From Mustelus asterias (Eukaryota), in contig NC_135825.1 in the NCBI RefSeq assembly GCF_964213995.1, forward strand, positions 12,958,001 to 13,022,000: a stretch of DNA of 64,000 nt. The letters are read 5' to 3'. Positions 7,930-32,100 of this stretch are shown one piece after another. The stretch's first letter is position 1. Every line of letters begins with the position of its first letter. The notes under the pieces are model-generated. The model worked only from the letters and a program-made list of their open reading frames with translations. It was not told the DNA's origin and did no database searches. The translations under genes were made by a program, and so were the position numbers.

Positions 7930-8020
7930 AAGTTGTGAAAGAGTGTGGTTGGTCAACTTCTCTGATCCTGTGGGTGTGGGGTAGATAGTTCCACTGCTAT
8001 GAGGAAGTAAATGATTCAGT
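7930..8020 (+). promoter_or_regulatory. Candidate TATA-less myeloid-type promoter
   Basis: TTGTGAAA (C/EBP-like, 7933-7940), TGTGGTT (RUNX, 7944-7950), GGGTGTGGG (KLF/CACCC, 7972-7980), GAGGAAGT (PU.1/Ets, 8001-8008) and TGATTCA (AP-1-like, 8012-8018), all within ~150 nt upstream of the ATG. Confidence 0.5.
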
Positions 8021-8083
8021 GCAGATCCTTTGACCGATTTAGAGACACTTGTGCTGAAAACGGTGGATACTTTTGCCGGGACC

Positions 8084-8123
8084 ATGAGGTTCACCGCGTT
8101 GCTGCTCCTCACTTTGATATCAA
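8084..8123 (+). CDS. Exon 1, leader peptide [13 protein letters not shown]
   Basis: ACCATG Kozak-like context, hydrophobic run, phase-1 donor A|GTAAG. Confidence 0.85.
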
Positions 8124-11100
8124 GTAAGATTTTCCAGTGCTATATGTGGAATGCCAGTTCACGTTTATGTAGAATCTTCATCTGAGGAAAATGGTTCAAA
8201 GTTGTTCACAGAGGAGTGAAGAAACACAGACTCTGGGCCAAAGGAGGGCAGGTGGAAAGGGTGAACCAAAAGCTCAGTCGAAGAGATGGGTTTTGAAGAG
8301 GGGGAGAGGGAGTTGGCGAGGAGAAGAGTTTTGACAACGGAGTCTCAGAATGTTGGATCTAATTGAAAACACGGCCATTAATGGTGGGGCACTTGGTTTC
8401 AGAGGAATGGAGAGTCCCCTCAGGGAGGGGGATAGTGGAATATCGGAGGACATTTCAGGAATGTGAACAGATTAGTATAATTTGCAAATTAACCTCGAAA
8501 CCCACATGGCGCTCACTCCTGCCACCCAGAGATAGCGACAGGAATAGAATCCATCATACCTTTCATACCTGAAGTAATAAAAAAAGAGAGGAAGATGGGG
8601 AATAGGACAGCCTGGATAGTTCTTCCTGAGAGTTCTGCAGTTTCAATGATGGGCAGTAGAGTTTCTTTCTGTGCTGTGAAATACGGTGACAGAGTGGTTA
8701 GCACTGCTGCCTCACAGTGCCAGGGACTTGGGTTCGATTCACAGCTCGGGTCACTGCCTGTGCGGAGTCTGCACGTTCTCCCCGTGTCTGTGGGTTTCCT
8801 CCGGGTGCTCCGGTTTCCTCCCACAGTTTGAAAGACGCGCTGGTTAGATGCATTGGCCATGCTAAATTCTCCCTCAGGCACCTGAGTGTGGCGACTAGGG
8901 GATTTTCACAGTAACTTCATTGCAATGTCAATGTCAGCCTACTTGTGACACGAATAAATAAACTTTACTACTTTGCCCACATGGAAATCAAATATCTCGG
9001 GATACGGATTAAACCCATTACTTCCCAACACATTAAGCAAATATCACGTTGAAGAAATTCTTGCCTGCGCCCTCAACTATCCTCCCTGCCATCCTATCTG
9101 TTGAATAAGATAACACACCGTCATTTCTGACCAATTAACATCGCTTCATAATATATATTAACTTTACATTTTAGATATTGCGTTTCTGCTTCAAATGCGA
9201 TTAAAGAAACGTGGACAAAACTTCTGGGGACTAAAGGAGCCTCTATATTCATCGAGAATGTGGCTTCACATGACCCAGGTTTTTACCTTTGTAAAGTATT
9301 TATCAGGCTGGGAAGATGAACGAGATCCCAGCCCTGGTGCTGAGGTTCTATAATTGAGGCCATTACCTGATTCACTCCTGCTTGCGATAACACAAAGGAA
9401 GAAAGGACATTACTCGAAAAGCAGGATATATTGTTCCTTCTGGAAGAGTACAGGCTTGAAATCGACTGGCTTGGCCTCACCCCAGTGCTAGGCTGAGGGG
9501 CTGGCCTGCAGAACGTGCTTCTTTCTCTCGGTGAGTTGGTGTCGCATTCCTGTACCCCACATCCTACTGCAAAGGCAGCTGTCCCAGAACACATCCAGTC
9601 ACCAAATGCATCACAAAGGTGGCCGCTGTCACGATTGGCTCAATCCTGAAAGAGCAGGCCCAAAGTTTGTATGTACTTGGAATATAGTGTTCAATTCTGG
9701 TCGCCACACTACCAGAAGAATGTGGAGGCTTTGGAGAAGGTACAGAAAAGATTTACCAGGATGTTGCCTGGAATGGAGGGCATTAGCTCTGAGGAGAGGT
9801 TGGAGAAACTTGGTTTGTTCTCACTGGAGCGACGGAGGTTGAGGGGAGACCTGATAGAAGTCTACAAGATTATGAGAGGCATGGACAGAGTGGATAGTCA
9901 GAAGCTTTTTCCCAGGGTGGAAGAGTCAATTACTAGGGGGCAGAGGTTTAAGGTGCGAGGGGCAAGGGTTAAAGGAGATGTACGAGGCAGATGTTTTACA
10001 CAGAGAGTAGTGGGTGCCTGGAACTCGTTGCCGGGGGAGGTAGTGGAAGCGGATACGATAGTGAGTTTTAAGGGGTGTCTTGACAAGTACATGAATAGGA
10101 TGGGAATAGAGGGATATGGTCCCCGGAAGGGTGGGGGTTTTAGTTAAGTCGGGCAGCATAGTCGGTGCAGGCTTAGAGGGCCGAAGGACCTGTTCCTGTG
10201 CTGTAATTTNNNNNNNNNNNNNNNNNNNNNNNNNNNNNNNNNNNNNNNNNNNNNNNNNNNNNNNNNNNNNNNNNNNNNNNNNNNNNNNNNNNNNNNNNNN
10301 NNNNNNNNNNNNNNNNNNNNNNNNNNNNNNNNNNNNNNNNNNNNNNNNNNNNNNNNNNNNNNNNNNNNNNNNNNNNNNNNNNNNNNNNNNNNNNNNNNNN
10401 NNNNNNNNNNNNNNNNNNNNNNNNNNNNNNNNNNNNNNNNNNNNNNNNNNNNNNNNNNNNNNNNNNNNNNNNNNNNNNNNNNNNNNNNNNNNNNNNNNNN
10501 NNNNNNNNNNNNNNNNNNNNNNNNNNNNNNNNNNNNNNNNNNNNNNNNNNNNNNNNNNNNNNNNNNNNNNNNNNNNNNNNNNNNNNNNNNNNNNNNNNNN
10601 NNNNNNNNNNNNNNNNNNNNNNNNNNNNNNNNNNNNNNNNNNNNNNNNNNNNNNNNNNNNNNNNNNNNNNNNNNNNNNNNNNNNNNNNNNNNNNNNNNNN
10701 NNNNNNNNNNNNNNNNNNNNNNNNNNNNNNNNNNNNNNNNNNNNNNNNNNNNNNNNNNNNNNNNNNNNNNNNNNNNNNNNNNNNNNNNNNNNNNNNNNNN
10801 NNNNNNNNNNNNNNNNNNNNNNNNNNNNNNNNNNNNNNNNNNNNNNNNNNNNNNNNNNNNNNNNNNNNNNNNNNNNNNNNNNNNNNNNNNNNNNNNNNNN
10901 NNNNNNNNNNNNNNNNNNNNNNNNNNNNNNNNNNNNNNNCACACTCACACAAACATATGCACATGCACACACATGCACATACACACACACACTCACAGAC
11001 ACATGCACACACACATATACATAAACACATACACACACATACACACCCGTACGCACGCAAACTCACATACACACACACATAAATGCACTTTATACACACA

Positions 11101-14100
11101 CACATGCACATGCACGTACGCACACGCAGACACATGAACATACACTCACATGCACATGTGCACACACAGTCATACACACCCACTCACACACACACGCCCA
11201 CACACATATATACACACACATACACACACACAAACACATGCACGCACGCATGCACNNNNNNNNNNNNNNNNNNNNNNNNNNNNNNNNNNNNNNNNNNNNN
11301 NNNNNNNNNNNNNNNNNNNNNNNNNNNNNNNNNNNNNNNNNNNNNNNNNNNNNNNNNNNNNNNNNNNNNNNNNNNNNNNNNNNNNNNNNNNNNNNNNNNN
11401 NNNNNNNNNNNNNNNNNNNNNNNNNNNNNNNNNNNNNNNNNNNNNNNNNNNNNNNNNNNNNNNNNNNNNNNNNNNNNNNNNNNNNNNNNNNNNNNNNNNN
11501 NNNNNNNNNNNNNNNNNNNNNNNNNGCACTCATACNNNNNNNNNNNNNNNNNNNNNNNNNNNNNNNNNNNNNNNNNNNNNNNNNNNNNNNNNNNNNNNNN
11601 NNNNNNNNNNNNNNNNNNNNNNNNNNNNNNNNNNNNNNNNNNNNNNNNNNNNNNNNNNNNNNNNNNNNNNNNNNNNNNNNNNNTACAGACACACACACTC
11701 TCACTCCCAAGGACACACACCCACACAATCCCTCACACAGACATACACGCACACTCACTCATTCCCTCACACACAGACTCTCACTCTCTCTCACACACAC
11801 ACACACACTCTCTCTCTCACTCTCCCTCCCACAAAAACACTCTCCCTCTCTCACTCCCACACACACTCACTCACACATTTGGGGCTCTGCTCAACAAAGT
11901 CTCACCCCTGGGCCTTGTGGCCAGCTCTCCTCCCCAGGACCTCCTCAGCCTTGTCCCCGGGCCCAGTTTGGAGGTGCTGGAGTTGGGTTCCGTGCACTCT
12001 GACAGCAACACCCCACTGGTGGAAGGGCACGATGAGAGGTAGTTGTGGGAATCTTGGGATTTTAAATATGAATATTAATTATAAAAATGAGGAGTTACAT
12101 TAACCCTTTACTGCTCACTTGTTACATCTCTGCTGGAGTATTGGGTACTCCAAGTATGGGGATATAAAAAGGGGCGGCACGGTGGCACAGTGGTTCACAC
12201 TGCTGCCTCACAGCGCCAGGGACCTGGGTTCAATTCCTGGCTTGGGTCACTGTCTGTGTGCAGTCTGCATGTTCTCCCCGTGTCTGCATGGGTTTCCTCC
12301 GGGTGTTCCGGTTTCCTCCCACAGTCTGAAAGGCTTGCTGGTTATTTGCATCGGCCAGGCTAAATTCTCCCTCGGTGTACCCGAACAGGTGCCGGTGTGT
12401 GGCGACGAGGGGATTTTCACAGTAACTACATTGCAGTGTTAATGTAAGTCTACTTGTGACTAATAAATAAACTTTACTTTACAATTCTGGGCACCACACC
12501 GAAGGAAGGAGGCAAGGGCACAGAGTGGATTTACCAGGATGATGCCAGGGATGAGGGAGTTTAGTTATGTGAACAGATTGGAGAAACCGAGATTATTGTC
12601 CTTGGAACAGAGCAGATTAAAGGGAAATCTAATCAATGTATTGAAAATGAGGAAGGGTTTTAATACAGCAAGTGGAGAGAGCAATTATTTCCTCTCGCTG
12701 GTGGATTGGTCACCAGAGATCATAGATTTCAAATAGTTGGAATACAAACCAGTGGATAAATGAGGGGAAATTATTTCATGCAGAAGATTGTTATGATGCG
12801 GAATACACCACCTGGAATGGTGATGGAATGAGATTCCAAAGGAACTTTCGGAAGGCAGTTGGACATGTGTTTGGAGGGGATTAATGTGCAGGGTTGTGGG
12901 GGAAGCTGGGCCGTGGGATTCAATTGGACAATAAATTTCCAAAGAGCTGGCACAGACATGACAGGCCGAATGTCCTCCTTCTCTGCTTTAAGATTCTTGA
13001 TTCCAGTCCCACCTAGGACGGTGGCACGGTGGCACAGTGGTTAGCACTGCTGCTTCACAGCTCCAGGGACCTGGGTTCGATTCCCGGCTTGGGTCACTGT
13101 CTGTGTGGATTTTGCACAGTCCCCTCGTGTCTGCGTGGGTTTCCTCCGGGTGCTCTGGTTTCCTCCCACGGTCCAAAGATGTGCGGATTAGGTTGATTGG
13201 CCATGTTAAAATTGCCCCTTAGTGTCCTGAGATGCATAGGTGAGAGGGATTAGTGGGTACAATATGTAGGGATATGGGAGTGGGGTCTGGGTGGGATTGT
13301 GGTCGGTGCAGACTCGATGGGACAAATGGCCTCTTTCTGGACTGTAGGGTTTCTATGATTTCTATGACTTGTGTGTGTCCCCTTGTGAAGCACTGGCTAG
13401 CATTGGACCAAAAGGATTGTCTACAATTGGTCGTTGGGATATTTTCAGCTTTCTTAAAACGTTATGTTTCACCAACAGTTTTATGGACACAAACTGCCTC
13501 GATAGTGATGAAAGCTGCAGTGGGAGAAACCATCACTGTGGAATGTCCACAGGCAACACAGCAAAAACACCATGAAATCTGGTGGTGTAAGAAAACTTCA
13601 TATAATTATTGCAATCAGATATCGAGCATTGACGGAGCCAGAGTCTGGAATGGTTATGCAAGAACATCGATCGCTAATACCAATGGTAACATTTTTGTAA
13701 CCATACAACAACTTCAGAAGACAGATACAGGAACATACTGGTGTGGACCTCAACAACACAACATTCTCCGTCCTTTAGATGTTATAGTACTGGAGGTTTT
13801 CTCAGGTAAGAATATTTCAGAAGATTGATTATAGCTCTGATAATGTGATCTGGCTGCAATAACACAGGACAGCTGCTGTGTGCTGTGTGAACTCAGATTA
13901 ATAAAATATTATCACAACTCCTGATGTACAAGTAGTGACCTCCCATACTCCCATTTCTATCCTTTTCCATTAACCTATTTCCACATCCTTTCAATTTATA
14001 CTCTTACAAACCAAAAATCATATTCCGCCCAAGACTCCTTTATTGATTCTTTCATGCGATGTGAGTGTCTGGAACAGCATTTATTGCACATCCCGAATTA

Positions 14101-17100
14101 TCCTTGAACTGCCTTCTTGAATCACTGCAGCTCATGAAGTGTACGTACACCCACAGTGCTGTTAGGGAAGGAGTTCCAGGATTGAGCCAGTGACGGTGAA
14201 GGAACGGCGATATATTTCCCAGTCTGGATGGTGTGTGTTTTGGAGGGAAGCTTGTAAGTGGTGGTGTTCCCATGCACAGGTTTGGAAGGAGATTTAATTC
14301 ATTGCTTTGTGTTTCCAGAGTAACTTGTATTAGATCGAGGGTGACTCAATGTGGTTTGAATCAATAAAGGCTTTATTGCCAACAATATGGCATGCTTGCC
14401 TTCATCAGACTGGGCATCGAGTATAAAAGTTGGCAAATTATGTTACAATTGTCTCAAACGTTGGTTAGGCCACATTTGGAATGCTGTGTCCAATTCTGGT
14501 CACCACACCACCAGAAGGATGTGGAGGCTTTGGAGAGAGTGAGGAAAAGGTTTACCAGGATGTTGCCTGGTACAGAGGGTATTAGCTATGAGGAGAGATT
14601 GAATAAACTGGGATTGTTCTCCCTGGAAAGACGGAGGCTGAGGGACAACCAGGTAGAAGTTTATAAAATTATGAGAGGTATAGATAGGGTGAACAGTTGG
14701 AAGCTTTTTCCCAGGGCAGAAATGACAATTACAAGGGGGCACAATTCAAGATAACGGGGGAAAGGTTCAGTGGAGATGTGCGGGGGAAGTTTTTTACACA
14801 GAGGGTGGTGGGGGCCTGGAATGCACTGCCAGGTGAGGTGGTTGAGGCACATTTAAGATTTAGATCGATCGGCATAGGAACAAACGGGGAATAGAGGGAT
14901 ATAAGCGGCAGGTCGAGATAGGTCAACATGATCAGCACAGGCTTGGAGGGCCGAAGGGCCTGTTCCTGTGCTGTACTGTTCTTTGTTCCTCACAATAAGA
15001 ATATATATATATATACACACCAAGGTCAGACTGAATTACAATGCAAATCTACTACCCGGCTCCCTGGCTCCAACTGCAAGACATTCCTCAACCCGTGGTT
15101 CACACCCTCTTGCCGATTGGCTCAGCTTCCAGGCTTCAGAATCCACAGGGCCTGACCCAATCACATGGCCCTCTAAACACTCCCCCACCCCAATTAAAGG
15201 GCCACAATCCTTCCCCCTAAAATCCGAAATACAACTATGGAGGAATAAAGAACAGGATTAGTGTTAAAATGAAAAGAGTAACAGAAATGGAAAACTCATC
15301 GAAGGTTTAATCAGTCCAGAGAATTCCAGTCTCTGGACCTGAATGTTTGTACCGCACTCTCCACTGGTCCATTTGAGGCTGCGTGGGAAGGTGTTGACCT
15401 CACATGGTGAATGCCATTGGACTTGAGGAATTTTTGGTTTTCTTCCACAGTGAATGATGTGCCATTGTCCGACACAACCACTTCCGGAATGCCACGGATA
15501 GCAGAGAATTTCCTCAATTGATCAATGGTGTCCGTGGCTGTTGGGGACTTCATCAACTGCATATCCGACTACAACTAATATAAGAAACACATGACCCAGA
15601 AATGGCCCGGCAAAATCTATATGTAACTTCGACAAAGGTCGACCAGGCCATTCCCAAAGATGCAAATTCATCTGTGGTGGTGAAGCCCATTGAGCTTCAT
15701 AACTAGAGCATTGACGAACCATCCGTTCTGTTTCCCTGCCAATGCCTGGTGAAAACACATATGCCTGGGGCCTTCATTCTACTTTGACCTCGATGACAGT
15801 GGTGCAGTTCTTGTAACAGGAGTGAAAGTTAAAGTCATAAGTCGGCTTACATTCACACTGCAATGGAGTTACTGTGAAAATCCCCGAGTCGCCACAATCC
15901 GGCGCCCGTTCGGGTACACTGAGGGAGAATTTAGCGTGGCCAATTCACCTAAGCAGCACGTCTTTGAAGTGTGGGAGGAAACCGGAGCACCCGGAGGAAA
16001 CCCACACAGACACGGGAAGAACATGCAGACACGACACAGACAGTGACCCAAGCCGGGAATCAAACCCTGGTCCCTGGCGCTGCGACACAGCAGTGCTAAC
16101 CACTGTGCCACCATACCTTCCTGGAGTCATCTCCCCAGGGGTGGCACGAGAAACTCTCGCCACCCGCAGCAACACCCCATCTTCACAGGTTATCTCCATC
16201 CTTCTACTTTGGTAGGGTTTGAGCTACTCTGACTTATATCACCACCCTCGTATTACCATCTTCTTTACTTCTGACCATACCGGCTCTCTTTTTTCCACAG
16301 TTTTATATGTTTCACCGAGACTGGCAAGGTCTCTACCAGATGCAGAGCCAGTATAATCTCTTGAGGAACCGGTGGTGGTGCGACTGTTTGTGGCAAAGGC
16401 AACAGCTAATTGCATCAGCTCGTGATATCTGCGTTCCAGGGTGATGCTGAAACGTATAACTGTACGCTGCAAACAAAGGAGCCCATCTCTGCATCCTTAC
16501 AGAGGCAATTAGTGGCACCGGCTTCTCTAAATAGACCTAACAATGGCTTGTGGCCTGAAACTATTGTAAAATGTCGCCCATAAATGACCAGCAAGTTTTC
16601 CTCATCTCTCTGGGAGTATTTCTTTTCCACATTTGATCCTGTCTCTCTCTCACACACACACTCTCCCCCTCACTCTCTCTCATTCTCTCGCTCACAAACT
16701 TTCTCTCACTCACAAACTTTCTCTCACTCTCAATACCACACACACACACTCTGTCTCTTATTCTCTCTCGCAATCACATACGCACTCTACCTTTCTCTCA
16801 CTCTCTCTCACTCTCTCCACACACACACACACACACACACACACTCTCCCTCTCACTCTCCTCCAACCCCTCCACACACACATGCACACACTCTCTCTCT
16901 CTCTCTCTTACTTACTCTCTACCTCACACACACAATCTCTCTCACTCCCGCGCACACATACACACCCACACGCACACACACACACAAACAGCAGTCACCC
17001 TCTTCCACCCTCCATCCTGGCCTAGGACTTTGCTCAACAGAGTCTCACTCTTGGACCTTGTGGCCATCTCTCCTCCCCAGGGCCTCCTCACACTTGTCCC

Positions 17101-20100
17101 CGGGCCCAGTTTCGAGATGCTGGAGTTGGGTTCCGGTGCACTCTGTTAGCAACACCCCACTAGTGGAAGGGCAGGTTGAGAGGCAGTTGTGCGATTCTTG
17201 GGGATGGCACGGTGGCACAGTGGTTAGCACTGCTGCCTCACAGCACCAGGGACCTGGGTTCAAGTCCTGGCTTGGCTCACTGTCTGTGCAGAGTCTGCTA
17301 ATTCTCCCCATCTCTGTGTGGGTGTCCTCTGGGTGCTCAGGTTTCCTCCCACAGACCAAAAGACATGCTGGTTAGGTGCATTGGCCATGCTAAATTCTCC
17401 CTCAGTGCACCCAAGCAGGTGCCGGAGTGTGGCGACTAGGGGATTTTCACAGTAACTTGGTTGCAGTGTTAATATAAGCCTATCTTTGATAATAAAATAA
17501 ATAAATAAAATTGGAGTATTAATTAGGGAAATGAGGTGTTCCACTAAACCTTTACTAATCACTGATTAGGTCTCTGCTGGAGTACTGGGTTCAATTCTGG
17601 GCACCACACTCGAGGAAGGAGGTCAAGGCCCTGGCAAGGGCACAGAGCAGATTTACCAGGATGATGCCAAGGATGAGGGTGTTTGGTTATGTGAACAGAT
17701 TGGAGAAACTGGGATTATTGTTCTTGAAACAGAGAATATTAAAGGGAAACCTAATCAATGTATTGAAAATGAGGAAGGGATTTAAAAGGCAGTTGGACAT
17801 GTGTTTGGAGGGGACTAATGTGCAGGGTTGTGGGGGAAGCTGGGCCGTGGGATTCAATTGGACAATAAATTTCCAAAGAGCTGGCACAGTCATGATAGGC
17901 CGAATGTCCTCCATCTCTGCTTTAAGATTCTTGATTCCAGTGCCACCCAGGACTTGTGTGTGTCCCCTTGTGAAGCACTGGCTAGCATGGGACCAAAAGG
18001 ATTGTCTACAATTGGTTGTTGGGATATTTCCAGCTTTCTTAAAATGTTATGTTTCACCAACAGTTTTATGGACACAAACTGCCTCGATAGTGATGAAAGC
18101 TGCAGTGGGAGAAACCATCACTGTGGAATGTCCACAGGCAACACAGCAAAAACACCAAGAAATCTGGTGGTGTAAGATAACTTCAGAAACTCGTTGCAAT
18201 CATATACCGATCATTGACGGAGACAGAGTCTGGAATGTTGATGCAAGAACATCGATCACTAATACCAACGGTAACATTTCTCTAACCATACAACAACTTG
18301 AGGAGACAGACGCAGGAACATACTGGTGTGGATCTCGATATCAAAACACTCTCCATGCTTTAGATGTTGTAATACTGAAGGTTTTCTCAGGTAAGAATAT
18401 TTCAGAAGATTGATTATAGCTCTGATAATGTGATCTGGCTGCAATAACACAGGACAGCTGCTGTGTGCTGTGTGAACTCAGATTAATAAAATATTATCAC
18501 AACTCCTCATGTACAAGTAGTGACCTCCCATATTCCCATTTCTATCCATTTCCATTAACCTATTTCCACATCCTTTCCATTTATACTCTTACAAACCAAA
18601 AATCATATTCCGCCCAAGCCTCTTTTATTGATACTTTTATGAAAAGTAAGTGTCGAGAACTGCACTTACAGTCCATCCCTAATTATCCTTGAACTGCCTT
18701 CTTGAATCACTGCAGCTCACGAGGTGTACGTACACCCACAGTGCTGTTAGGGAGGAAGTTCCAGGATTGAGCCAGTGACAGTGAAGGAACGGCGATATAT
18801 TTCCCAGTCTCGATGGTGTGTGTTTTGGAGGGGAGCTTGTAAGTGGTGGTGTTCCCATGTACCTGCTTCCCTCCTCCTTCTAGGTGTTAGATGTTGCAGG
18901 TTTGGAAGGAGATTTAAATCATTGCTTTGTAATAGATCGAGGGCGACTCAATCTGGATTGAATGAATTAAGGCTTTTTTGCCAACAATAAGAATATACCT
19001 ATATATACATATACATGTGCAACAAGGTCAGACTGAATTACAATGCGAATCTACTACTCGGCTCCAACTGCAAAACGTTCCTTCATCCGTGTTTCGCACC
19101 CTCTTGCCAATTGGCTCAGCTTCCCACCTTGACAATCCACAGCGCCTGACCCAATCACATGGCCCTCTAAACACTCCCCCACCCCAATTAAAGGGCCACA
19201 ATCTTTCCCACTAAAATCCGAAATACAACTATGGAGGAATAAAGAACAGGCTCAGTGTTAAAGTGAAAAGAGTAACAGAAATGGAAAACTCATTAAAGGT
19301 TTAATCAGTCCAGAGGATTCCGGTCTCTGGCAGAGTGCCTCAGTTCAGTGGTTTGCTCTCCGAAGTTTAAAGGGCCAGACGGGACAGACAGACTCATCAA
19401 TCCAGGGTCTGGTGGCTCTTCAGCAGCTTCTGGTTCCTCAGTCTCCACAACCAGCGGTTGCTGCGCTCCCACATTCTCCACCAAAATCCCAGTAACCAAC
19501 CCCGGCAAAGTTCAACCAACTGCAGGGGGCACCTGTTGATCCTCTGCGTCCATCACTCTCTCCTCCTTCGATGGTCTACCTGTTTCCTGAGCTGACAGCT
19601 TTGTATCTCCACAACGTCGGAGACCGGTCCTGTTCTCTCCACAATTTTACCAGCCACCCAGGACGGGCCTGGTGTAAAATACCTGACCAAGACTGCACCC
19701 CCACTTGAAACACTCTGTTTCCTTTTCTTGAATCACAGTTTTCCTTCTGAAAGACTAACCTAGCCTGCACACTCCCTGGCGAATTTGGAAACATCATGTC
19801 CAGTTGTGTTCTGAACTCGCATCCCATCAGCAACTCTGCTGGAATAACCCCTGTGGTCACGTTTGGGGTGGGGTTATAAGACAACAAAAAACTGTCCATA
19901 CAAAAAGGAAGAGAACAGTTTACTTGTTTTATTATTGATGATTTGAATGTTTGTACCACACTCTCCACTGGTCCATTTGAGGCTGCGTGGGAAGGTGTTG
20001 ATCTCACATGGTGAATGCCATTGGGCTTGAGGAATTTTTGGAATTCTTCCACAGTGAATGATGTGCCATTGTCCGACACAACCACTTCCGGAATGCCATG

Positions 20101-23100
20101 GATAGCAGAGAATTTCCTCAATCCATCAATGGTGTCCGTGGCTGTTGGGGACTTCATCAACTGCATATCCAACTACAACTAACATATGGCCCAGAAATGG
20201 CCGGCAAAATCTATATGTAACTTCGACCAAGGTTGACCAGGTCATTCCCAATGGTGGTGAAGCCCATTGAGCTTCGTAACTATGGCATTGATGAACCATC
20301 CGTTCTGTTTCCCTGCCAATGCCTGGTGAAAACACATATACCTGGGGCCTTCATTCTACTTTGACCTCGATGAGAGTGGTGCAGTTCTTCTAACAGGAGT
20401 TAAAGTTAAAGTCACAAGTAGGCTCACATTCACACCAATGAAGTTACTGTGAAAATCTCCATGTCACCACAATCCGGCGCCTCTTCGGATACACTGAGGG
20501 ATAATTTAGCGTGGCCAATTCATCTAACCAGCATGTCTTTGGAGTGTGGGAGGAAACCAGAGCACCGAGAGGAAACCCAACAGACACGGGAAGAACATGC
20601 AGACACGACTCAGACAGTGATCCAAGCTGGGAATCAAACCTTGGTCCCTGGCGCTGCGACGCAGCTGTGCTAACCACTGTGCCACCATACCTTCCTGGAG
20701 TCATCTCCCCAGGGGTGGCACGAGAAACTCTCGCCACCCACAGCAACACCCCATCTTCACAGGTTATCTCCATCCTTCTACTTTGGTAGGGTTTGAGCTA
20801 CTCTGACTTATATCGCCACCCTCGTATTACCATCTTCTTTACTTCTGACCATACCGGCTCTCTTTTTTCCACAGTTTTATATGTTTCGCCGAGACTGGCA
20901 AGGTCTCTACCAGATGCAGAGCCAGTATAATCTCTTGAGGAACCGGTGGTGGTGCGACTGTTTGTGGCAAAGGCAACCGCTAATTGCGTCTGCTCGTGAT
21001 ATCTGCGTTCCAGGGTGATGCTGAAACGTATAACTGTACGCTGCAAACTAAGGAGCCCATCTCTGCATCCTTGCAGCGGCAATTAGTGGCACCGGCTTCT
21101 CTAAATAGACCTAACAATGGCTTGTGGCCTGAAACTATTGTAAAATGTCGCCCATAAATGACCAGCAAGTTTTCCTCATCTCTCTGGAAGGATGACACAC
21201 ACACTCTATCTCTCTCTTATTCTTTCTCCCAATTACACACACACTCTAACTTTCTCTCACTCACTCTCACTCTCACTCTCTCTATACACACACACACACA
21301 CACTCCTTCTCACTCTCTCCCCACCCCCCACACACTCATGCACACACTCTCTCTCTCTCTCTCTCACACGCTTACAGAACAAAGAGATCTAGGGGTACAT
21401 GTTCATAGCTCCTTGAAAGTGGAGTCACAGGTGGACAGAGTGGTGAAGAAGGCATTCGGCATGCTTGGTTTCATCAGTCAGAACATTGAATACAGGAGTT
21501 GGGACGTCTTGTTAAAGTTGTACAAGACATTGGTAAGGCCACACTTGGAATGCTGTGTGCAATTCTGGTCACCCGATTATAGAAAGGGTATTATTAAACT
21601 AGAAAGAGTGCAGAAAACTGCACTATAAGTGCAGTTCTCGACACTCACTTTTCATAAAAGTATCAATAAAAGAGGCTTGGGTGGAATATGATTTTTGGTT
21701 TGTAAGAGTATAAATGGAAGGGATTTGGAAATAGGTTAATGGAAAATGATAGAAATGGGAATATGGGAGGTCACTACTTGTACATGAGGAGTTGTGATAA
21801 TACTTTATTAATCTGAGTTCACACAGCACACAGCAGCTGTCCTGTGTTATTTTCTGGGATGCTACCGGGACTTAATGAATTGAGTTATAAGGAGAGGCTG
21901 AATAGACTGGGACTTTTTTCTCTGGAGCGTAGGAGGCTGAGGGGTGATCTTATAGAGGTCTATAAAATAATGAGGGGCATAGACAAGGTAGATAGTCAAT
22001 ATCTTTTCCCAAAGGTAGGGGAGTCTAAAACTAGAGGGCATAGGTTTAAGGTGAGAGGGGAGAGATACAAAAGTGTCCAGAGGGGCACTTTTTTCACACA
22101 GAGGGTGGTGAGTGTCTGGAACAAGCTGCCAGAGGTAGTAGTAGAGGCGGGTACAATTTTATCTTTTAAAAAGCATTTAGATAGTTACATGGGTACGATG
22201 GGTATAGAGGGATATGGGCCAAATGCGGGCAATTGGTATTAGTTTAGGGGATTTTTTTAAAAAGGGCGGCATGGACAAGTTGGGCTAAAGGGCCTGTTTC
22301 CATGCTGTAAACCTCTATGACTCTCCCTCTCACACACAAACACACACACAGTCGTCATTCTCTTCCACCCTCCATCCCAGCCTAGGGCTTTGCCCAACAG
22401 AGTCTCACTCCTGGGCCTTGTGGCCAACTCTCCTCCCCAGGCCTCCTCAAACTTGTCCGCAGGCCCAGTCTGGAGATGCTGGAGTTGGGTTCCGGTGCAT
22501 TCTGACAGCAACACCCCACTGGTGGAAGGGCAGGTTGAGAGGCAGTTGTGGGATTCTTGAGGACGGCACAGTGGCACAGTGGTTAGCCTCACAGCACCAG
22601 AGACCTGGGTTTGATTCCAGGCTTGGGTCACTGTCTACGTGGAGTTTGCACATTCACCCCGTGTCTGTTTGGGTTTTCTCCGGGTGTTCCGTTTTCCTCC
22701 CACAGACCGAAAGATGTGCTGGTTAGGTGCATTGGCTTTCTAGTTTAATAATATCCTTTCAATAATAGGGTGACCAGAATTGCACACAGTATTCCAAATG
22801 TGGCCTTACCAATGTTTTGGTAAGACTCCCCCATTCCCCAACCAACCTCCACCTTGAACAAATCTATCAGCAAAATCCAGCTTGTTGTTACCACTCGATA
22901 CCAGGAGGGTGATCCAGTCTGGAAAGTGCCTGCCTGGTTCAGCGAAGACAGATAAACTGCCTGTCTGAAGGTTTCTGCATTAAGTTAACTGTAAGACTTT
23001 AGAAGTGGCCTCTCTTATTAGCAAGCTTGCTGTGAGATGTTACCCTGGCCTTCTTGTGACATGTTAAAACCGACCTTCCTGTGACATGTTAAAAATGGCC

Positions 23101-26100
23101 TTCCTGTCACATGTTAAAACCAACCTTCCTGTGACGTGTTAAAACTGGCCTCTCTGCTTCTGCGGGAGTTGGCAATTATACCCTGGCTATCTTTGATTCT
23201 GCTCACTGTTTTCTGAACTGTCTGCCTCTCCCACATTCCTTGACCCTCGAAAATTAGGATCTGTATGCCACCCCTGATGCTACAGATATCTCGCGAAACC
23301 ACTTCCTGATAACAGGGCCATTTACGTCTGAACTTATCTAGATGGTTGCTAGGGAACACATCTCATCAGCCCATTTGAATGTGGGTTCCTGCTGTTGCCA
23401 GGCAGATTCTTCCTATTTTGCGAAGGGCACTGCCCCCGACCACCCAGGAGGCTTCAATGATCTCCACTCCCACTGCCGAGGCAATCACATCTGGTACCCG
23501 TTGCTGGGGAACCGTACGTGATCCTCGCAAGTAAGGACCTCGACTAGTGGCAAGGTAAGGGCAAGTGAACCCAGACAATAGCGTGTGGTACTCACTAATT
23601 ACTCACGCACTCTCAAAGATTCCTCTCACGCCGCCCTCCCCCCTCCTCAACCCCCCATCCAGACACCACTCCCCCACTCCTGGATTGCGCCAGTCTTCTT
23701 TCCTCATAAGGGCAATGGGCCCAGTGCAGGAAGGTGGGATTACAAAGTGAACCTGGGTGTCCTTGGGCTGGCATGGACAAGATGGGCCAAATGACCTACT
23801 TCTGAGCTGTAATTTTTCAATGGTTCTGTCCTACCCCCGTTTCCCACTTCCTCCTCCCTCTGCCCCTCTCCCCTCCACCCCACTCTTCTGCTCTCCTCTC
23901 GCCATCCCCCACTCTACGCCCAGGGCCACCGAGACTCACTCCTCCAATCCTGAATACAGCATAATAGTAATGCATACATTAATAAAATGAACTAAGAACT
24001 AATGGGGATCTGATGGTGGTTTTGAACATCTGGACTGATAGCTTTTTTGGACTAAATAAAAATAAATAAATTCAGGTTTTATTTAATTCATTTCCTTGTG
24101 TTTTGATGCAGGTTTTCTGAGCGAATTCGATGCCTTTGATCACATTTGATGTCAAATGACAGTTGATCATTTTTAGCTCAAAAATAATGTCAACATTTTC
24201 TTGTAGCTTTTGATCTCAATGGGTGAGATTTCAACATTCTAGAATTTACCAGTGACCAGAATCTGAACTGGACTAGCCATGTAAACACTGTGGCTACTGG
24301 AGTAGGTCAAAGGCTAGGAATCCTGAGGCGAGTAACCCACCACCTGACTTTTCAAGGCTGACCATAGAACCACAGAAATGATACAGCACAGAAGGGGGTC
24401 ATTCAGCCCATCTTGTCCATGCTGAGCCAAAGACACTCAAGTGCCCTTTCTAATCCCATATTCATGCACACGGCCCATAGCCTGTAGCTTACAGGACTTA
24501 AGGTGCAGATCTGCCTCCACCACCAACTCAGGCACTGAATTCCATACCCACCATTGAGTGGGTATGGAAGTCAGGAAAGAGATGGAATACTCTCCATTTG
24601 TTTGGATGTGTGTAGCACCAACACTTAAGAAGCTCAACACTGTCCAGGACAAAACAGCCCACTTGATTGCTATCCCTTCCACAAAAAAACTCAATCCCTC
24701 CCCCATCAATGAACAGTGACAGTGTACCATCTACAAGATGCACTGCATGAACTTACCAAGACTCCTTAGGCAGCACCTTCCAAACCCACGACCACCACCA
24801 TCTAGAAGGACAAGAGCAACAAAAACCTGGGAACACCTTTCACCTGGAGGCTCCCCTCCAAGCCACTCAGCATCCTAATTTGGAAATGTATTGCTGTTCC
24901 TTTACTATCGCTGTGTCAAAGTCCTGGAATTCTCACCCTAACAGCACAGTGGGTATACTTTGCAATGAAGATTCAAACTCTATTTGACCTACAAGTAACA
25001 AACTCATGTTGCTTGTAAGTCTTTCATGTTCATCCAAAACTAGACCCAGTTCCTGTAGAACAGGCCTGGAGTTGGATACCATCCATCAACTTTGAAAATT
25101 CACCCAGACATGCTGAGCAATTTCATTGCAGCTGCAGAAAATAGAAATGGTTTTTATTAACCTTAGACCCAGACACCTCTGAAATTTTAAATGAAGTGTT
25201 TAGAATGAGCAAGAATTGAATACAGGAGCGTTTAACAATTACACTGCATTTTATGACTATAATCCTTTTCGTACTTTAAAAACAGAAAATATTGTTGACA
25301 TTTTCAATGTTTGGTTAATTTATCATGTTTTGGGCAATGAAAAATGTTCAGTTTTTCACCATTTTGAACTTTTAATGGCTCTTTTTCTCATTTATCAACA
25401 GGTAGATGGGAACCAATCCTATCAGAGGTCAGTGGTGTTGTGGGAAATGCCGCCACTATACCGTGTCTGTTCACGGAGAAGGAGAGACTCTATCAGAAAT
25501 TCTTGTGTAAAGCAACCTCTGTAAATAAATGTATTATTATTGCCAGCTCTAATGGAGTTCCAGAGAATCGGAATAACGGGAACGTTTCAATCACTATTGA
25601 TAATTCTTATAATTTTATCGTTACCATGAATAACATAGACAAAGGCAATGAAGGAGAGTATTGGTGTGGAGCAGAAAAAATCAATGACATAAAGATCGTA
25701 GCGATCAGAAACTTGACAATTACTGAAGGTAAGGATCAATATAAAATTATTATAATTCAATCAGTATTGTATAAAACTCACAAAACAATAACAGAGGCTG
25801 GCATGGTGGTGCAGTGGTTTGCACTGCTGCCTCACAGCACCAGGGACCCGGATTCCATTCCAGCCTCGGGTCACTGTCTGTGTGGAGTTTGCACATTCTC
25901 CCAGTGTCTGTGTGGGTTTCCTCCGGGTGATCAAGTTTCCTCCCACACTCCAAAGATGTGCGGGTTAGGTTGATTGGCCATGCTAAATTGACCCAAGCGT
26001 CAGGGGAATTACCAGGGTTAATATAGGTTACGGGAATAGGGCCTCGGTGGGATTGTAGTCGGTACAGACTCGATGGGCCAAATGGCCTCCTTCTGTCCTG

Positions 26101-29100
26101 TAGGGATTCTATGATTCTTTGAACAATTGGTCAATGCTGTTGTTCATGTTTTACACAAGGCTATCACCCTATTTCATCTCAATCTTGCAGCATATCCTTC
26201 TATTCTTTTCCCCCTCAGTAAGTTCCTCTCGATTCACCCGAAAAGTATCTACAATATTTGGCACCACTGCACCTTATGGTACAGGTAAACACAGAAACAT
26301 AGGAAATGGGAGCAAGAGTATTCCTTCAGCATACCTCAGATTCACTAAACAAAAACCAGCAATGTCCATAAGCTGGACATTTTTAAGACGTTCTGTGCAC
26401 CAATTTTAACCGAGTAAGTGTTTTTTTAAACTTACCTGGACAATTCTGCCTCGGCACTGTGTTCGCCGTCATGTAGCTCTCGACTAGTTACCGGCTTCAC
26501 TGCTTCATATTCCACTCTCTCCGCCACTCCAAGTGACCCTTACACCAGCCGACCCAGAGAGACATGAACCACCCGTGGCCTGAACCACCCGACCGCATTC
26601 CAGCAAGGTCTGAAATCCAGCAGGACTGGATTTGAGCGATTGCACCCAATTCCACATTGAACAAGTTCCACCTTCTAACAACTCTCTGGGGAAGGAGGTT
26701 AGAAACTTTCACTGATACTAATAGTAACCGTCAATAATAAAAATATATTGAAAGTTCATAGAATCGCTACAATGCAGATGGAGGCCATTCAGCCCACACT
26801 CACAACAATCCCACCCAGGCCCTATCCTCGTAACCCCACACATTTACCCTGCTAATTCCCCAACACCAAGGGGTAATTTAGCATGACCAATCAACCTTAA
26901 CCTACACATCTTTGTTGTGTAGGAGGAAACCAGAGCACCCAGAGGAAACCCACGCAGACACGGGGAGAATGTGCAACCTCCATGCAGACGGTGCCCCAAG
27001 CCAGGAATCGAATCCGGGTCCCTAGCACTGTGAGGCAGCAGTGCTAACCACCATGCCACTGTGCTGCACCTCACAGATTATTGTCCATCCGACACTATTA
27101 GCCCCCTGTGAAGCCCCCTCACAATCTACCTTCTCCTCAGCCTTTTCACAAGATTATATACGTTAGTTAATTTTATTGTTACCAAGAGGAAAGGAAATGA
27201 AGGAGTGTTCTGGTGTGGAACAGCAAAAATAAATGGTGGAAACCTTGTAAAGATAAGAGAATCGGACAGTTGCTGACGGTAAGATTCTATGTAAGATTAT
27301 TATAATTCAGTCGGTATTGAATCGAACTCGGAACGGAAACTTGGCCAATACCAGTGCTTGTGCTTCACATGAGGCCCATTCTAGTCACCCCTTATCTCAC
27401 TCTTTTAGCATCCCCTTTGGTTCATTTCCGTCTAAATGCCTTTATCTCGCTCCCCATTAAAAGCATCTATGACTTTTGCCACAACTTCTGCTTACGGTAG
27501 CAAGTTTCACATTTCACAGGTTCCACATTCTAACAATTCTGAGTAAAGAACTTTCTTCCTGAATTCCTCATCGGTTATTTTAGTAACCATTTTAGATTTT
27601 GGTTCTGTCATAATCATAGAATCACAGAATCCCTGCAGTGCTGAAGGAGGCCATTTGGCCCATCGAGTCTGCACCGAACACAGTCCCACCAAGGCCCTAT
27701 TCCCGTAACCCCTCTTTTTTATCCTGTTAACTCCCCTGACACTAATTTAGCATGGCCAATCAACCGAACCCGCACATATTTGGACTGTGGAAGGAAACCG
27801 GAGCGCCCGGAGGAAACCCATGCAGACACGGGGAGAATGTGCAAACACTACACAAACAGTGACTCGAGGCCGGGATCGAACCTGGGTACTTGGCGCTGTG
27901 AGGCAGCAGTGCTAACCACTGTGCCATGCAACCCCAGTGCATAAGTGGAAACAACTCTTATGTCTTATGATTTTTTTCCCCACCATGCATGGGATGTTGG
28001 TGCCTCTGAGGAGGCCAGCTCTAACTAAATTTGATTTGATTTGATATATCATTGTCACATGTATTACTATACAATGAAAAGCATTGCTTCCTGCATGCTA
28101 TACAGACAAGGCATACCGTTCAGAGATAAGGAAAGGAGAGAGTGCAGAATGTAATGTTACATTCATAGCTAAGGTGTAGAGAAAGATCAGCTGAGTGCAA
28201 GGTGGGCCCATTGTAGAGTCTGTTTGCAGCAGGGGAGCAGCTGTTCTTGAGTCGGTTGGTACATGTCCTCCGACTTTTGTATCTTTTTCCGACAGAAGAA
28301 GGTGGAAGAGAGTATGTCCTGGGTGCGTGGGGTTCTTGAAAGCTGGCTGCTTTTCTGAGGCAGCAGGAGGTGTAGACAGACTCAACGGATGGGAGGCTGG
28401 TTTGCGTGATGGACTGGGCTTCATTCATGACCCTTTGTCATTTTTTGCGGTCTTGGGTAGAGCAGGAGCCACACCAAGCTGTGATACAACCAGAAAGAAT
28501 GTTTTCTGTGGTGCATCTGTAAAAGTTGGCGAGAGTCGTAGTGGACATGCCAAATTTCCTTAGTCTTCTGAGAAAGTAGATCCTTTGGGGGGCTTTCTGA
28601 ACTATAGTGTTGTCATGGGAAGACCAGGACAGGTTGTTGGTGATCTGGATACCTAAAAGCTTGAAGCTCTTGACCATTTCTACTTCGTCCCCATTGATGT
28701 AGACAGGGGCATGTCCTCTACTACGCTTCCTGAAGTCAATGACAATCTCCTTCATTTTGTTGACATTGAGGAAGAGATTGTTGTTGTCACACCAGTTCAC
28801 CAGATTCTCTATCTCTTTCCTGTACTCCGTCTCATCATTATGTGAGATTCGACCCATTGGTGGTGATGTCATCAGCAAACATGAAAATTGAGTTGGAGTG
28901 GAATTTGTCCACACAGTCATAGGTGTATAAGGAGTATAAAAGGGTGTTAAGAACACAGCCTTGTTGGGCACCGGTGTTGAGGATGATCGTGGAGGAGGTG
29001 TTGTTGCCTATCCTTACTGATTGCGATCTGTGGGTTCGGAAGTCCAGGATCCAGTCCAAATGTGAACATTTGGTGGCAGGTCACTGCTGCAATCCATGTA

Positions 29101-32100
29101 GTGTTGGTGCTGTTTGGGAGAGAATCCCAGGATCCGAATCCAGTGAGAGTGAGATAACAACGATGCATTTCTAAACCTGGGTAGAATATTACACATACTT
29201 ATTTGATCAGGCAGCACGGTGGCACAGTGGTCAGCACTGCTGCTTCACAGCGCCAGGGACCCAGGTTCAATTCCGGCCTTGGGTCAGTGCCAGTGTGGAG
29301 TTTGCACATTCTCCCCATGTCTATGTGGGTTTCCCCCGGGGGGTTCGGTTTCCTCCCACAGTCCAAAGGTGTACAGCAAAGGTTGATTGGCCATGCTAAA
29401 TTGCCCCTTAGTGTCAGAGGAATTAGCATGGTAAATACATGGGGATAGGGCCTGGGTGGGATTGTGGTTGGTGCAGACTCAATGGGCCGAATGGCCTCTT
29501 GCTTCACTGTTGGGAATCTATGACTCTAATCCATCTATGAGCTTTCGTGAAATCATTGCTTGCGGTAGCACGTAGAATTCAGTAAATGTAGATAAATTGG
29601 CATCTTAATCTGGACATAAAAACATTTGCAAGTCATCACTTCGATTTCGAATGAGCAACAAGTGAGGCCACGATTATTTCTCTTTGTTTCAGCCTCACTT
29701 TATGATGAAAGAAGATAACCTCATTCTGTGTTATGGGGCAGAAACATATATTGAAGAAGCTCTGTGGCAAATCCACCCTCATTTTGAGTTTGACCACATT
29801 GGACAGTGAGGCATCAAGTAATCTTTCCCTGTACAAGGGAAGAAAAGATTAAGGGTGCAGTCACGGCTCGGCGCTTTGGATGGATTCTTACCAGCGCCAT
29901 TAGCATTGCCAACTTTGATTAGGGTGGCACGATGGCACAATAGATAGCACTGCTACCTCACAGCACCAGGGACCCAGGTTCAATTCCAGCTTTGGGTGTC
30001 TGTCTGTGTGGAGTCTGCACGTTCTCCCCATACCTGCGTGGGTTTCCTCCGGGTGCTCCGGTTTCCACCCACAGTCCAAAGATGTGCTGGTTAGGTGGGT
30101 TAACCATGCTAAATTGATCCTCAGTGTCCAGGAATTTGTAGGTTTAGTGAATTGGCCATGGTAAATTTACAGGGTTACGGGAATAGGACAGTGGGGGGGT
30201 GAGGGGGGGTGTTAGGGGCATAAGGCTAGTAAGATGCTCTTTCAGAGAGTCAGTGCAGGCTCAATGAGCCGAATGGCCTCCTTCTGCACTGTAGGAAGTT
30301 TATAGAAATATACTTCTCCAACCATGCTCCAACCATCAGTCACCCAACACATGCATCTCGTGACATACCACCTTCCTACGCGAATTGGAAAACATAAAGG
30401 CTCATTTTTTGAGTGGATGATGCATGATTGTCAGTGAAATAGCATTTCCACTGCCCCCCTCCGTCACCCCCACCATTTTCAATATTTTTATAACCAATAA
30501 AGAGAAGTGTTCGAAGAAAATGACCAAAAGAAATCTTTTTTAATGTCCGGATGATTTTTCTCCAGTGTCCTGGAGATTCCAGATCAATCCAGGAGGGTTG
30601 GTGACCCTAACTCCCTGGAGGTGATGTTACAGGTGGAGGCAAGGGGAATTTCAGACAGTTAAGTGTCGGGACAGTTCTCCACTGTTGTCCCACCTCTGGG
30701 CCAGTATCCCATGGGCAGACTACCATGGGAACTGTCAGCCTACTCCCTGGAGACAGGCAGTCAACAAAGCCAATTAAGGGTCTACTCAGCAGCCATTTTC
30801 AGCAGTCACTGGAATTTTCCTGGTATCAAGCCCCAACCTCCACTGTTCCCCACTCCCCCCCTCCCCCACCCATCCCTTCCCATCCCCCCCCACCCCACTC
30901 CTCCCACTGGGGCCAGAGCCAGCTCTTTGAAGACAACCTCCCAGCAGATGGAAGGCCATTGGACCCTCTTCTCAATCCCCCTATTCATGGAGCCACACAA
31001 ACTAAAGAGCCACAACCACAATAACTCCTGCCAGGGAGATCCCCCTTCAATCTGATAGCCCAAATGGATGTGGGCCTTCTTCAATTGCAAATTCTCTACA
31101 GGCCTCTGAGGTCACCTCCATTTTGATAAAACCCCCTCAGTCCCCTAGCTGCCTGTTTGACCATAAACTAAATCTATCTCTTCCTCTGCTCCCTTTGCAC
31201 AAGATTATGCGACAATTCAAGACAAGGAAATCCGTTCAACCAGCGTCCATCCGTCCATCCATCCATCCATCCATCCATCTATCCATCCATCCATCTATCC
31301 ATCCAGCCAAATCTATTCATCCATCCATAGCCATCCAGAATTTGACCAGTTGGCTCAAGGAAACTGAAAAGGCGGCACGGTAGCACAGTGGTTAGCACTG
31401 CTGCTTCACAGCTCCAGGGACCCGGGTTCAATTCCCGGCCTTGGGTCACTGTCAGTGTGGTGTTTGCACATTCTCCTCGTGTCTGCGTGGGTTTCCTCCG
31501 GGTGCTCTGGTTTCCTCCCACAGTCCAAAGATGTGGGCAGGTTAGGTTGATTGGCCCTTAGTGTCCTGAGATGAGTAGGTTAGAGGAATCAGCGGGTAAA
31601 TGTGCAGGGATATGGGGGTAGGGCCTGGGTGGGATTGTGGTCGGTGCAGACCCGATGGGCCGAATGGCCTCTTTCTGCACTGGAGGGTTTCTATGATTCT
31701 ATGAAACAGCCAATGATCAGAATGTTTAAAATATGCCCCCTTCGCCACAGAACTGCGCCCGCCTGCCCCTCCCTGCCCCATAACACCCACATTTGCTTTC
31801 TTAAATACTGTGTGATGAGAATAAAAGTATGTTATTATTGGGAATTATTATCAGTTATTGACTGACTTATTCATTCATGTTTGCTTGGAAAAACAGGGAA
31901 TTCAGAGGTACCCAGCAATGGCCAAAGGTGAGATTTCAATAATTGTCTCGATATAATTTCTAATCATTCTAATTAAACTCATATTGACTAGATAGTTCTG
32001 CTCTCTTCATAATATTGCTGTGCAATCCGATATCTTTAAAACTACCACAATCCCCACAACTGCCTGTATGGCCCTATACTTTTCCTCATATAATTCCTAT

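Follow-up and report, generated by a model that had tools for sequence, protein, structure and literature searches.

An inverted copy of intron sequence behind tandemly duplicated V-set exons of a polymeric immunoglobulin receptor-like gene in Mustelus asterias

A receptor gene with duplicated V-set exons

We analyzed a stretch of 64,000 nucleotides (nt) from Mustelus asterias (contig NC_135825.1, positions 12,958,001 to 13,022,000 of the forward strand; hereafter the window, with positions counted from its first base). The window holds a receptor gene with two duplicated V-set immunoglobulin (Ig) exons, D1a and D1b, which are followed by a third, D2. The intron sequences behind D1a (the A arm) and behind D1b (the B arm) are copies of each other, and a reverse complement of them, the inverted copy, lies further downstream between D1b and D2. 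An initial annotation of this DNA read the inverted copy as the docking site of a Dscam-like switch between two alternative V exons. We favour a different origin, a recent insertion of locally copied sequence.

Exons were searched singly, and full-length comparisons were made with database proteins, not with a joined exon model. When the D1b exon alone was used as the query against 1.84 billion representative proteins, the best match was a protein of 390 amino acids (aa; P0001) with three matched stretches. A search with P0001 as the query returned two further proteins encoded on the same 58.7-Mb contig, XP_078098264.1 (isoform X1, 482 aa) and XP_078098265.1 (isoform X2, 432 aa), both named 'polymeric immunoglobulin receptor-like' of Mustelus asterias in RefSeq. 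The translations of the leader, D1a, D1b and D2 are exact strings of both RefSeq products starting at residues 1, 15, 124 and 233, respectively (D1a, residues 15-122; D1b, residues 124-231), and the remaining X1 sequence maps exactly to 31896-31925, 33515-33637, 40314-40358 and 43523-43750. These exact exon matches indicate that the gene in the window is that of XP_078098264.1 and XP_078098265.1. X2 differs from X1 only by loss of the stalk and transmembrane exons (31896-31925 and 33515-33637), which is the sole alternative splicing annotated for the gene, and is probably a secreted form.

The exons described here lie on the plus strand. The coding part of the leader exon (8084-8123; exact at residue 1 of P0151 and P0152) is followed by a donor after 8123. 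D1a (13479-13805; Pfam V-set, E = 3.9e-11) and D1b (18064-18390; E = 6.9e-14) are each 327 nt long and of phase 1-1, with AG/GT flanks and one open frame, and D2 (25402-25728), also of 327 nt, likewise scored as a Pfam V-set domain (E = 1e-10). The initial annotation had described D1a and D1b as in-frame exons of this length, and the step of 109 codons per exon that it deduced was right; the products of 403 and 512 aa that it predicted differ from the RefSeq model, in which X1 has 482 aa instead. Exact peptide mapping of the P0151 tail placed the transmembrane exon at 33515-33637 (coding match) and the last coding exon at 43523-43750. The latter encodes a cytoplasmic tail with three tyrosine motifs, which we take to be similar to immunoreceptor tyrosine-based inhibitory motifs (ITIM-like). 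The best PDB matches of D1b and D2 were pIgR (E = 8.7e-29 and 4.9e-28, respectively), followed by CMRF35/CD300, and the V-set Ig domains being closest to these proteins makes the gene a CD300/pIgR-like receptor.

D1a and D1b belong to two tandem duplication units. In a blastn map, colinear blocks at offsets of 4.6-5.4 kb place unit A, which holds D1a, at approximately 12482-17500, and unit B, which holds D1b, the B arm and a retroelement fragment with the inverted copy, at approximately 17592-22736, both on the plus strand. Each unit has specific insertions of its own, and, with simple repeats excluded, most blocks of 100 aligned columns show an identity of 0.89-0.99 between A and B. An end-piece of the duplication unit, with a repeat resembling a short interspersed nuclear element (SINE), is present three times (11812-12471, 16965-17501 and 22313-22736); this threefold presence would fit unequal crossing-over between flanking repeats as the origin of the duplication. 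Runs of N lie just upstream of unit A (10210-10939, 11256-11525 and 11536-11683). Both units also carry, on the minus strand, a fragment of a long terminal repeat-type element with an integrase core (rve, E = 1.4e-07; 15314-15568 in unit A and 19579-20172 in unit B). This fragment is longer in unit B; approximately 613 bp of that unit (19331-19943) are missing from unit A.

D1a and D1b differ at 32 of 327 nt, and every difference lies after an identical first 87 nt. The changes comprise 30 non-synonymous and 2 synonymous ones (dN/dS 4.45; one-sided binomial p = 0.019), so that 27 of 108 residues differ, and the surrounding intron is approximately 95% identical. Positive selection is driving the two V exons apart. 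The donor context does not differ between them, and in the acceptor region 3 of the 70 positions upstream of the exon have changed; therefore, neither D1 exon is marked as the weaker one. Further, joint inclusion of D1a and D1b keeps the reading frame, both being 327 nt long.

The relatives counted were 54 proteins with E <= 1e-20, and the length window of 215-683 aa would admit forms with a single D1. No product without a D1 exon was found among the three Mustelus asterias proteins in this set. The three sequences compared from other sharks (P0002, P0003 and P0005) have one D1 followed by D2, and relative to them the three V domains of the present gene arise via duplication of the D1 exon in this lineage. 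On the same contig, the paralog XP_078054025.1 (390 aa) has two D1-type domains and then D2 in one product. It carries an arginine in its transmembrane stretch and is presumably of the activating type. Its domains are identical to those of the present gene at 76-84 of 107-108 residues in all pairings, and these identities do not discriminate between a shared and an independent origin of its D1 duplication.

The inverted copy and its place in a retroelement fragment

The A arm (13858-14084) and the B arm (18443-18675), both on the plus strand, begin 53 nt past the donors of D1a (13805) and D1b (18390), respectively. The inverted copy (21619-21851, minus strand) is the reverse complement of the B arm. 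When 8000-26000 was scanned for inverted repeats, it paired with the B arm over 233 nt (18443-18675 with 21619-21851; 96% complementary, 2943 nt apart) and with the A arm over 227 nt (13858-14084 with 21625-21851; 92% complementary, 7540 nt apart). This inverted repeat is far beyond chance. A blastn search with 18400-18720 against the 64-kb window found three places, namely the query itself, 13815-14134 (93.4%) and 21851-21619 (96.1% over the 233 nt, E = 8e-108). The inverted segment of 226 bp that the initial annotation placed at 21626-21851 is thus real, with its left edge moved by a few bases; the matches that it gave as approximately 97% on the D1b side and 92% on the D1a side are borne out by the present values, and so is the start of each arm exactly 53 nt after its donor.

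Short contigs of four sequencing runs (X15, X17, X18 and X19) were placed on 17800-23700 to obtain copy number and variants. The depth in X15 was alike over the D1b exon bins (319.9 and 129.6) and the intron bins, and the runs were therefore taken as DNA. Over the B arm (bin 18391-18587), the depth was 340.8 in X15 and 26, 6.14 and 58.3 in the other runs, which resembles single-copy bins and is lower by four to five orders of magnitude than the depth of the retroelement bins (1e5-1e6). The inverted copy, too, has single-copy depth, in contigs that carry variants of their own. With three copies in 64 kb and single-copy depth, the arms do not behave as copies of a dispersed repeat, and the description of them as unique intron sequence holds. 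A search for Rfam families in 12000-23000 found none. A transposable-element origin of the arms was rejected on these three observations (three copies, single-copy depth, no Rfam match).

When the A arm, the B arm and the inverted copy are aligned, 208 of 233 columns show no difference. Of the 25 variable columns, 16 set A apart from a state shared by B and the inverted copy, 5 set the inverted copy apart and 3 set B apart; in the remaining column each copy has a state of its own. The 16 columns that group the inverted copy with B show that it was made from the B lineage, after the exon duplication. Further, the runs vary at 21725, 18648 and 18669, three of the nine sites that distinguish the B arm from the inverted copy, and at each of them the alternative letter restores the match, which indicates a recent origin. 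Contigs of organism H (run X19) lie over 12 of the 40 listed variant places and over neither of the two inside the inverted copy.

The identity between the A and B arms is 0.97 and 0.91 per 100 nt, compared with 0.86-0.99 in the neighbouring intron; judged within this genome, neither conservation nor covariation of the arms exceeds the neutral level. Thirteen of the 16 positions at which A alone differs fall in the last 57 nt of the arm (14034-14087; 18619-18672 in B). This patch is approximately 75% identical inside a stretch of 97-99% identity, and a conversion tract and a local cluster of mutations are candidates for it.

The inverted copy is cleanly inserted in a 5'-truncated retroelement fragment that is present in unit B only. 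The left part of the fragment (plus strand, from approximately 21380 to 21618) aligns to five further window copies of the element, and the alignment resumes directly after the insertion in the right part (plus strand, from 21852 to approximately 22310). An open reading frame at 21817-22239 carries on the C-terminal frame of the retroelement. At the corresponding place in unit A, the 955 bp of 21370-22324 are faced by 142 bp of simple repeat (16823-16964). A longer copy of the retroelement on the minus strand (42965-44805) contains an RVT_1 domain (E = 4.7e-07), and we read the element as a long interspersed nuclear element.

The 233 bp interrupt an otherwise continuous retroelement, and all five other window copies are without them. 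In all four runs, we found contig joints that skip 232-239 nt (from 21615-21617 to 21849-21857). The depth of these joints reached 1469.9 (X15), compared with approximately 100 for single-copy sequence, and the letters at the joints vary between contigs. We take these joints to come from family members that lack the insert, rather than from alleles of this locus. The five window copies and the high-depth joints together rule out that the 233 bp are a feature of the retroelement family.

The insertion junctions lack a target-site duplication, and the retroelement has lost no more than 1-2 bases there; the insertion is therefore not a transposition. A templated insertion fits the arrangement, with the donor sequence nearby (2943 nt upstream), the recipient intact and no target-site duplication. 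The right junction shows approximately 3 nt of shared sequence, and the left one is flanked by a 6-nt motif and its reverse complement; these motifs are too short to be distinguished from chance. Template switching by reverse transcriptase during insertion of the retroelement was set aside by reasoning, because it would require an antisense intron RNA to copy from and a resumption at precisely the next base of the retroelement RNA.

An inverted piece of 84 nt at 22736-22819 is 93% complementary to the retroelement at 21523-21606, just left of the insertion. Because the other retroelement copies in the window are only 68-78% alike, this piece may be part of the same rearrangement.

Predicted pairing in the pre-mRNA

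The arms and the inverted copy are opposite-orientation copies in one transcription unit, between exons of XP_078098264.1, and long duplexes are predicted for both combinations. The duplex energy was -391.6 kcal/mol for the pairing of the inverted copy with the B arm (B pairing) and -342.0 kcal/mol for that with the A arm (A pairing), whereas single arms folded alone reached -29 to -48 kcal/mol. The A pairing contains 22 non-Watson-Crick positions in 233 columns (5 of them wobble pairs), with a longest perfect run of 48, and the B pairing contains nine (2 wobble and 7 disruptive), with a longest perfect run of 55. As seven of the nine mismatches in the B pairing are disruptive, they look drift-like and give no sign that pairing has been kept up. 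The B pairing lies wholly inside the D1b-D2 intron and encloses no exon, whereas the weaker A pairing encloses D1b. The geometry that the initial annotation had pointed out is therefore present, with one downstream inverted copy complementary to a sequence behind each D1 exon and an A-side pairing that would enclose D1b. Removal of D1a is impossible through the inverted copy alone.

These two pairings are not the only ones in the region. Between 8124 and 25401 there are 17 inverted pairs, 11 of which enclose one or both D1 exons. The 15 pairs other than the A and B pairings are mostly derived from SINEs or retroelements, and the complementarity of the SINE pairs is 79-86%. For four SINE-derived pairs, the computed duplex energies were -398.6 to -478.2 kcal/mol, stronger than those of both the A and B pairings. 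The SINE-like repeat at 12181-12461 (plus strand) pairs around D1a with 15833-16112 (281 nt, 86%, -478.2 kcal/mol), part of an inverted repeat between D1a and D1b (15833-16122, minus strand). Another, upstream of D1b (17202-17482, plus strand), pairs with 15844-16121 (-443.7 kcal/mol) and with 20419-20695 (-398.6 kcal/mol), the latter within an inverted repeat downstream of D1b (20410-20696, minus strand).

All sets of mutually compatible helices without crossings were enumerated for the 17 pairs. The B pairing is part of the best one (-1234.4), the best set with the A pairing reached -930.6, and the top eight sets are all without the A pairing. This helix-level model is crude and ignores loop costs, kinetics and proteins; it shows only the direction of the bias.

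Two further features lie downstream of the region of these pairings. At 27169-27258, 1.4 kb beyond D2, a short fragment resembles D2 (33 residues at 57.6% identity, E = 4.5e-06) and is probably the fossil of a partial Ig exon. A minisatellite at 37121-40072, in the intron that separates the transmembrane exon from the cytoplasmic exon after it, consists of 98.5 copies of a 30-nt unit with 90% matches and is open in all three plus-strand frames.

Origin of the inverted copy and comparison with known systems

We consider it probable that the inverted copy is a recent local inverted templated insertion, that is, a scar of repair or replication whose main effect on the RNA would be an intronic hairpin. 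The order of events was as follows. A unit of approximately 5 kb with a D1 exon was tandemly duplicated; a 5'-truncated retroelement then inserted into unit B; finally, 233 bp of the intron behind D1b were copied in reverse into this retroelement, which lies 2.9 kb further along that intron. Templated synthesis or fragment capture, in break repair or by template switching in replication, is the most likely route of this copying. In the pre-mRNA, the inverted copy would pair mainly with the B arm and form a near-perfect hairpin of 233 bp in the D1b-D2 intron, and the default product would remain leader-D1a-D1b-D2. The A pairing would be possible and disfavoured, giving at most a minor by-product in which D1b is skipped or circular. 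The inverted copy itself is presumably neutral, and the B pairing would presumably dominate in vivo. The initial annotation had named a functionless rearrangement scar as its own alternative, and this fits best with a copy that is young, nested in a retroelement and without extra conservation, beside exons that are annotated in tandem.

Several points weigh against this conclusion. The predicted duplex energies ignore the cost of loops, the co-transcriptional order of folding, splicing kinetics and proteins. None of the 19 listed runs is recorded as RNA covering 13479-18390 (their word share is 0.05-0.07 in 14 and 0.22-0.58 in 5), and exon use rests on RefSeq models, of unstated transcript support, which may miss rare isoforms. 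Among the contig pieces listed, none bridges either insertion junction, and the orientation of the inverted copy rests on the assembly. Finally, by analogy with other inverted repeats, a 233-bp duplex that begins 53 nt behind a donor could influence splicing without ever having been selected.

This last point leads to a rival explanation, in which the inverted copy has an unselected side effect on the RNA: skipping of D1b or a circular RNA through the A pairing, a change in the efficiency of the D1b-D2 intron through the B pairing, or adenosine-to-inosine editing. Both duplexes are predicted to be very stable, with perfect runs of 48 and 55 bp, and the arms begin close to the donors. Moreover, inverted intronic Alu pairs are described as base-pairing, being edited and shifting a neighbouring exon from constitutive to alternative (PMC2533698), short inverted repeats are reported to suffice for the circularisation of exons (PMC4201285), and distance and competition between flanking complementary sequences are said to influence the outcome (PMC8391333). 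However, D1 skipping is absent from the annotated products, and because 11 of the 17 inverted pairs already enclose a D1 exon and four SINE pairs are stronger, the added effect may be small. We regard such a side effect as possible, though rather unlikely. An assembly error, or membership of the three copies in a transposable-element family, is a far more remote explanation and in our view very unlikely. It would agree with the lack of a junction-bridging contig among the pieces listed, and also with the source segment ending a few bases from a high-copy repeat that starts near 18680 (depth jump in bin 18588-18784). Against it, the inverted copy differs from its source at nine of 233 positions (3.9%), whereas an assembly flip would be identical. 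Further, a contig of run X18 (record 23) lies on 21686-21820 with two other letters and without four of the five B-arm states in this span; a third, distinct copy is therefore present in an independent run. An assembly flip is unlikely given this divergence, the precise nesting in the repeat and this contig with its own variants, and a mobile family is opposed by the depth, the copy number, the lack of a target-site duplication and the lack of an Rfam match.

The selected Dscam-like system of docking and selector sequences proposed initially, by which one receptor backbone would carry alternative V domains, also has points in its favour. One sequence is complementary to a site beside each variable exon, in a 'right docker' layout treated in the discussion of mutually exclusive exons by Ivanov and Pervouchine (PMC6071210). 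The dN/dS between D1a and D1b suggests that alternative use would pay off, competing RNA structures in ATE1 provide a vertebrate precedent (PMC7797038), and the SINE pair 12181-12461/15833-16112 encloses D1a and would cross the A pairing as a pseudoknot, much as in a bidirectional model. Nevertheless, we judge this system to be very improbable. At the level of annotation the exons are not mutually exclusive, as the 482- and 432-aa products each hold D1a and D1b in tandem, and the paralog XP_078054025.1 likewise encodes D1-D1-D2 in one product. The docking candidate postdates the duplication and sits in a unit-specific retroelement, the arms have no extra conservation, and the disruptive mismatches of the B pairing speak against selected pairing. 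The pairing that loops out no exon is favoured by approximately 50 kcal/mol, and these introns are already crossed by inverted SINE pairs that are predicted to be at least as stable. Neither weak splice sites nor the frame bars joint inclusion of D1a and D1b, and the element cannot cause D1a to be skipped, so that alternative V domains on one backbone do not follow from it. For the functional switch itself we found no support. A newborn 'right docker', in which the post-duplication copy tunes the ratio of a three-V (D1a-D1b-D2) to a two-V (D1a-D2) receptor, is also improbable, if a little less so. As part of this possibility, the D1a-enclosing SINE pair that would cross the A pairing would approximate a bidirectional geometry and allow alternative V exons.

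Known docking and selector sequences are short conserved elements. The arms in the present gene are 227-233 nt long and near-perfect, and in contrast to Dscam1-type systems the docking candidate arose after the exon duplication and inside a retroelement. A further difference is that the annotated products hold both exons, with an element that cannot exclude D1a and with no evident barrier from a repressor, weak sites or frame. The likeness to arthropod Dscam1, 14-3-3zeta and Mhc, as these are presented in PMC6071210, is that one downstream intronic sequence is complementary to a site behind each duplicated exon, with mutually exclusive pairings, and that pairing with the upstream selector loops out the intervening exon. 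According to the same source, a one-sided docker accounts for only one of the two splicing choices. The origin model outlined there starts with an intronic stem, one arm of which is then duplicated in tandem to give two selectors and one docker (PMC6071210). The end state is the same here, where the duplicated exon carried its intron along and gave two selector-like copies and one site. However, compared with the model as outlined, the order is reversed: the site was copied from the B selector after the duplication, and hence is not equidistant from both selectors.

Among vertebrates, intronic elements R1 and R4 of human ATE1, with exons 7a and 7b, are described as competing for R3, and as conserved and validated by disruptive and compensatory mutations (PMC7797038). 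ATE1 resembles the present gene in that both are vertebrate genes with a duplicated pair of exons and with long-range pairings in the introns that compete. Its exons, however, are truly mutually exclusive and its elements conserved, as reported there, whereas the present locus gives no conservation signal and no evidence of exclusivity. Inverted Alu pairs, as described in the source cited above, share with the present case opposite-orientation copies in one pre-mRNA, long duplexes and competition between pairing within an intron and pairing across an exon; they differ in that the arms here are single-copy intron sequence, with a complementarity (96%) above that of the SINE pairs in these introns. 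Finally, the skate MDIRs have been described as resembling CD300, TREM and pIgR (PMC3031540). The gene in the window shares with CD300, pIgR and MDIR receptors V-set domains closest to pIgR and CMRF35/CD300, the likeness to MDIRs being by description only, and is distinguished by having three V domains through the lineage-specific D1 duplication. A search limited to one literature library found nothing in print on the control of exon choice by RNA structure in the CD300/pIgR family.

As the evidence stands, the locus is mainly a well-dated case in which a templated insertion, local and inverted, entered a shark intron rich in repeats. A geometry of one docker and two selectors follows almost automatically from a tandem duplication and any later inverted copy, and caution is advisable in reading function into it; here, it is surrounded by many SINE-derived pairings of equal strength. 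The insertion, if it proves polymorphic or species-specific, would offer a natural test of what a 233-bp intronic hairpin does to splicing. If the newborn docker were true, the locus would show the birth of a module of competing RNA structures by a route absent from the published model, with the docker copied from a selector. If exon choice were steered by the inverted copy, the gene would be an early-stage vertebrate case of competing RNA structures arising around newly duplicated exons of an innate immune receptor.

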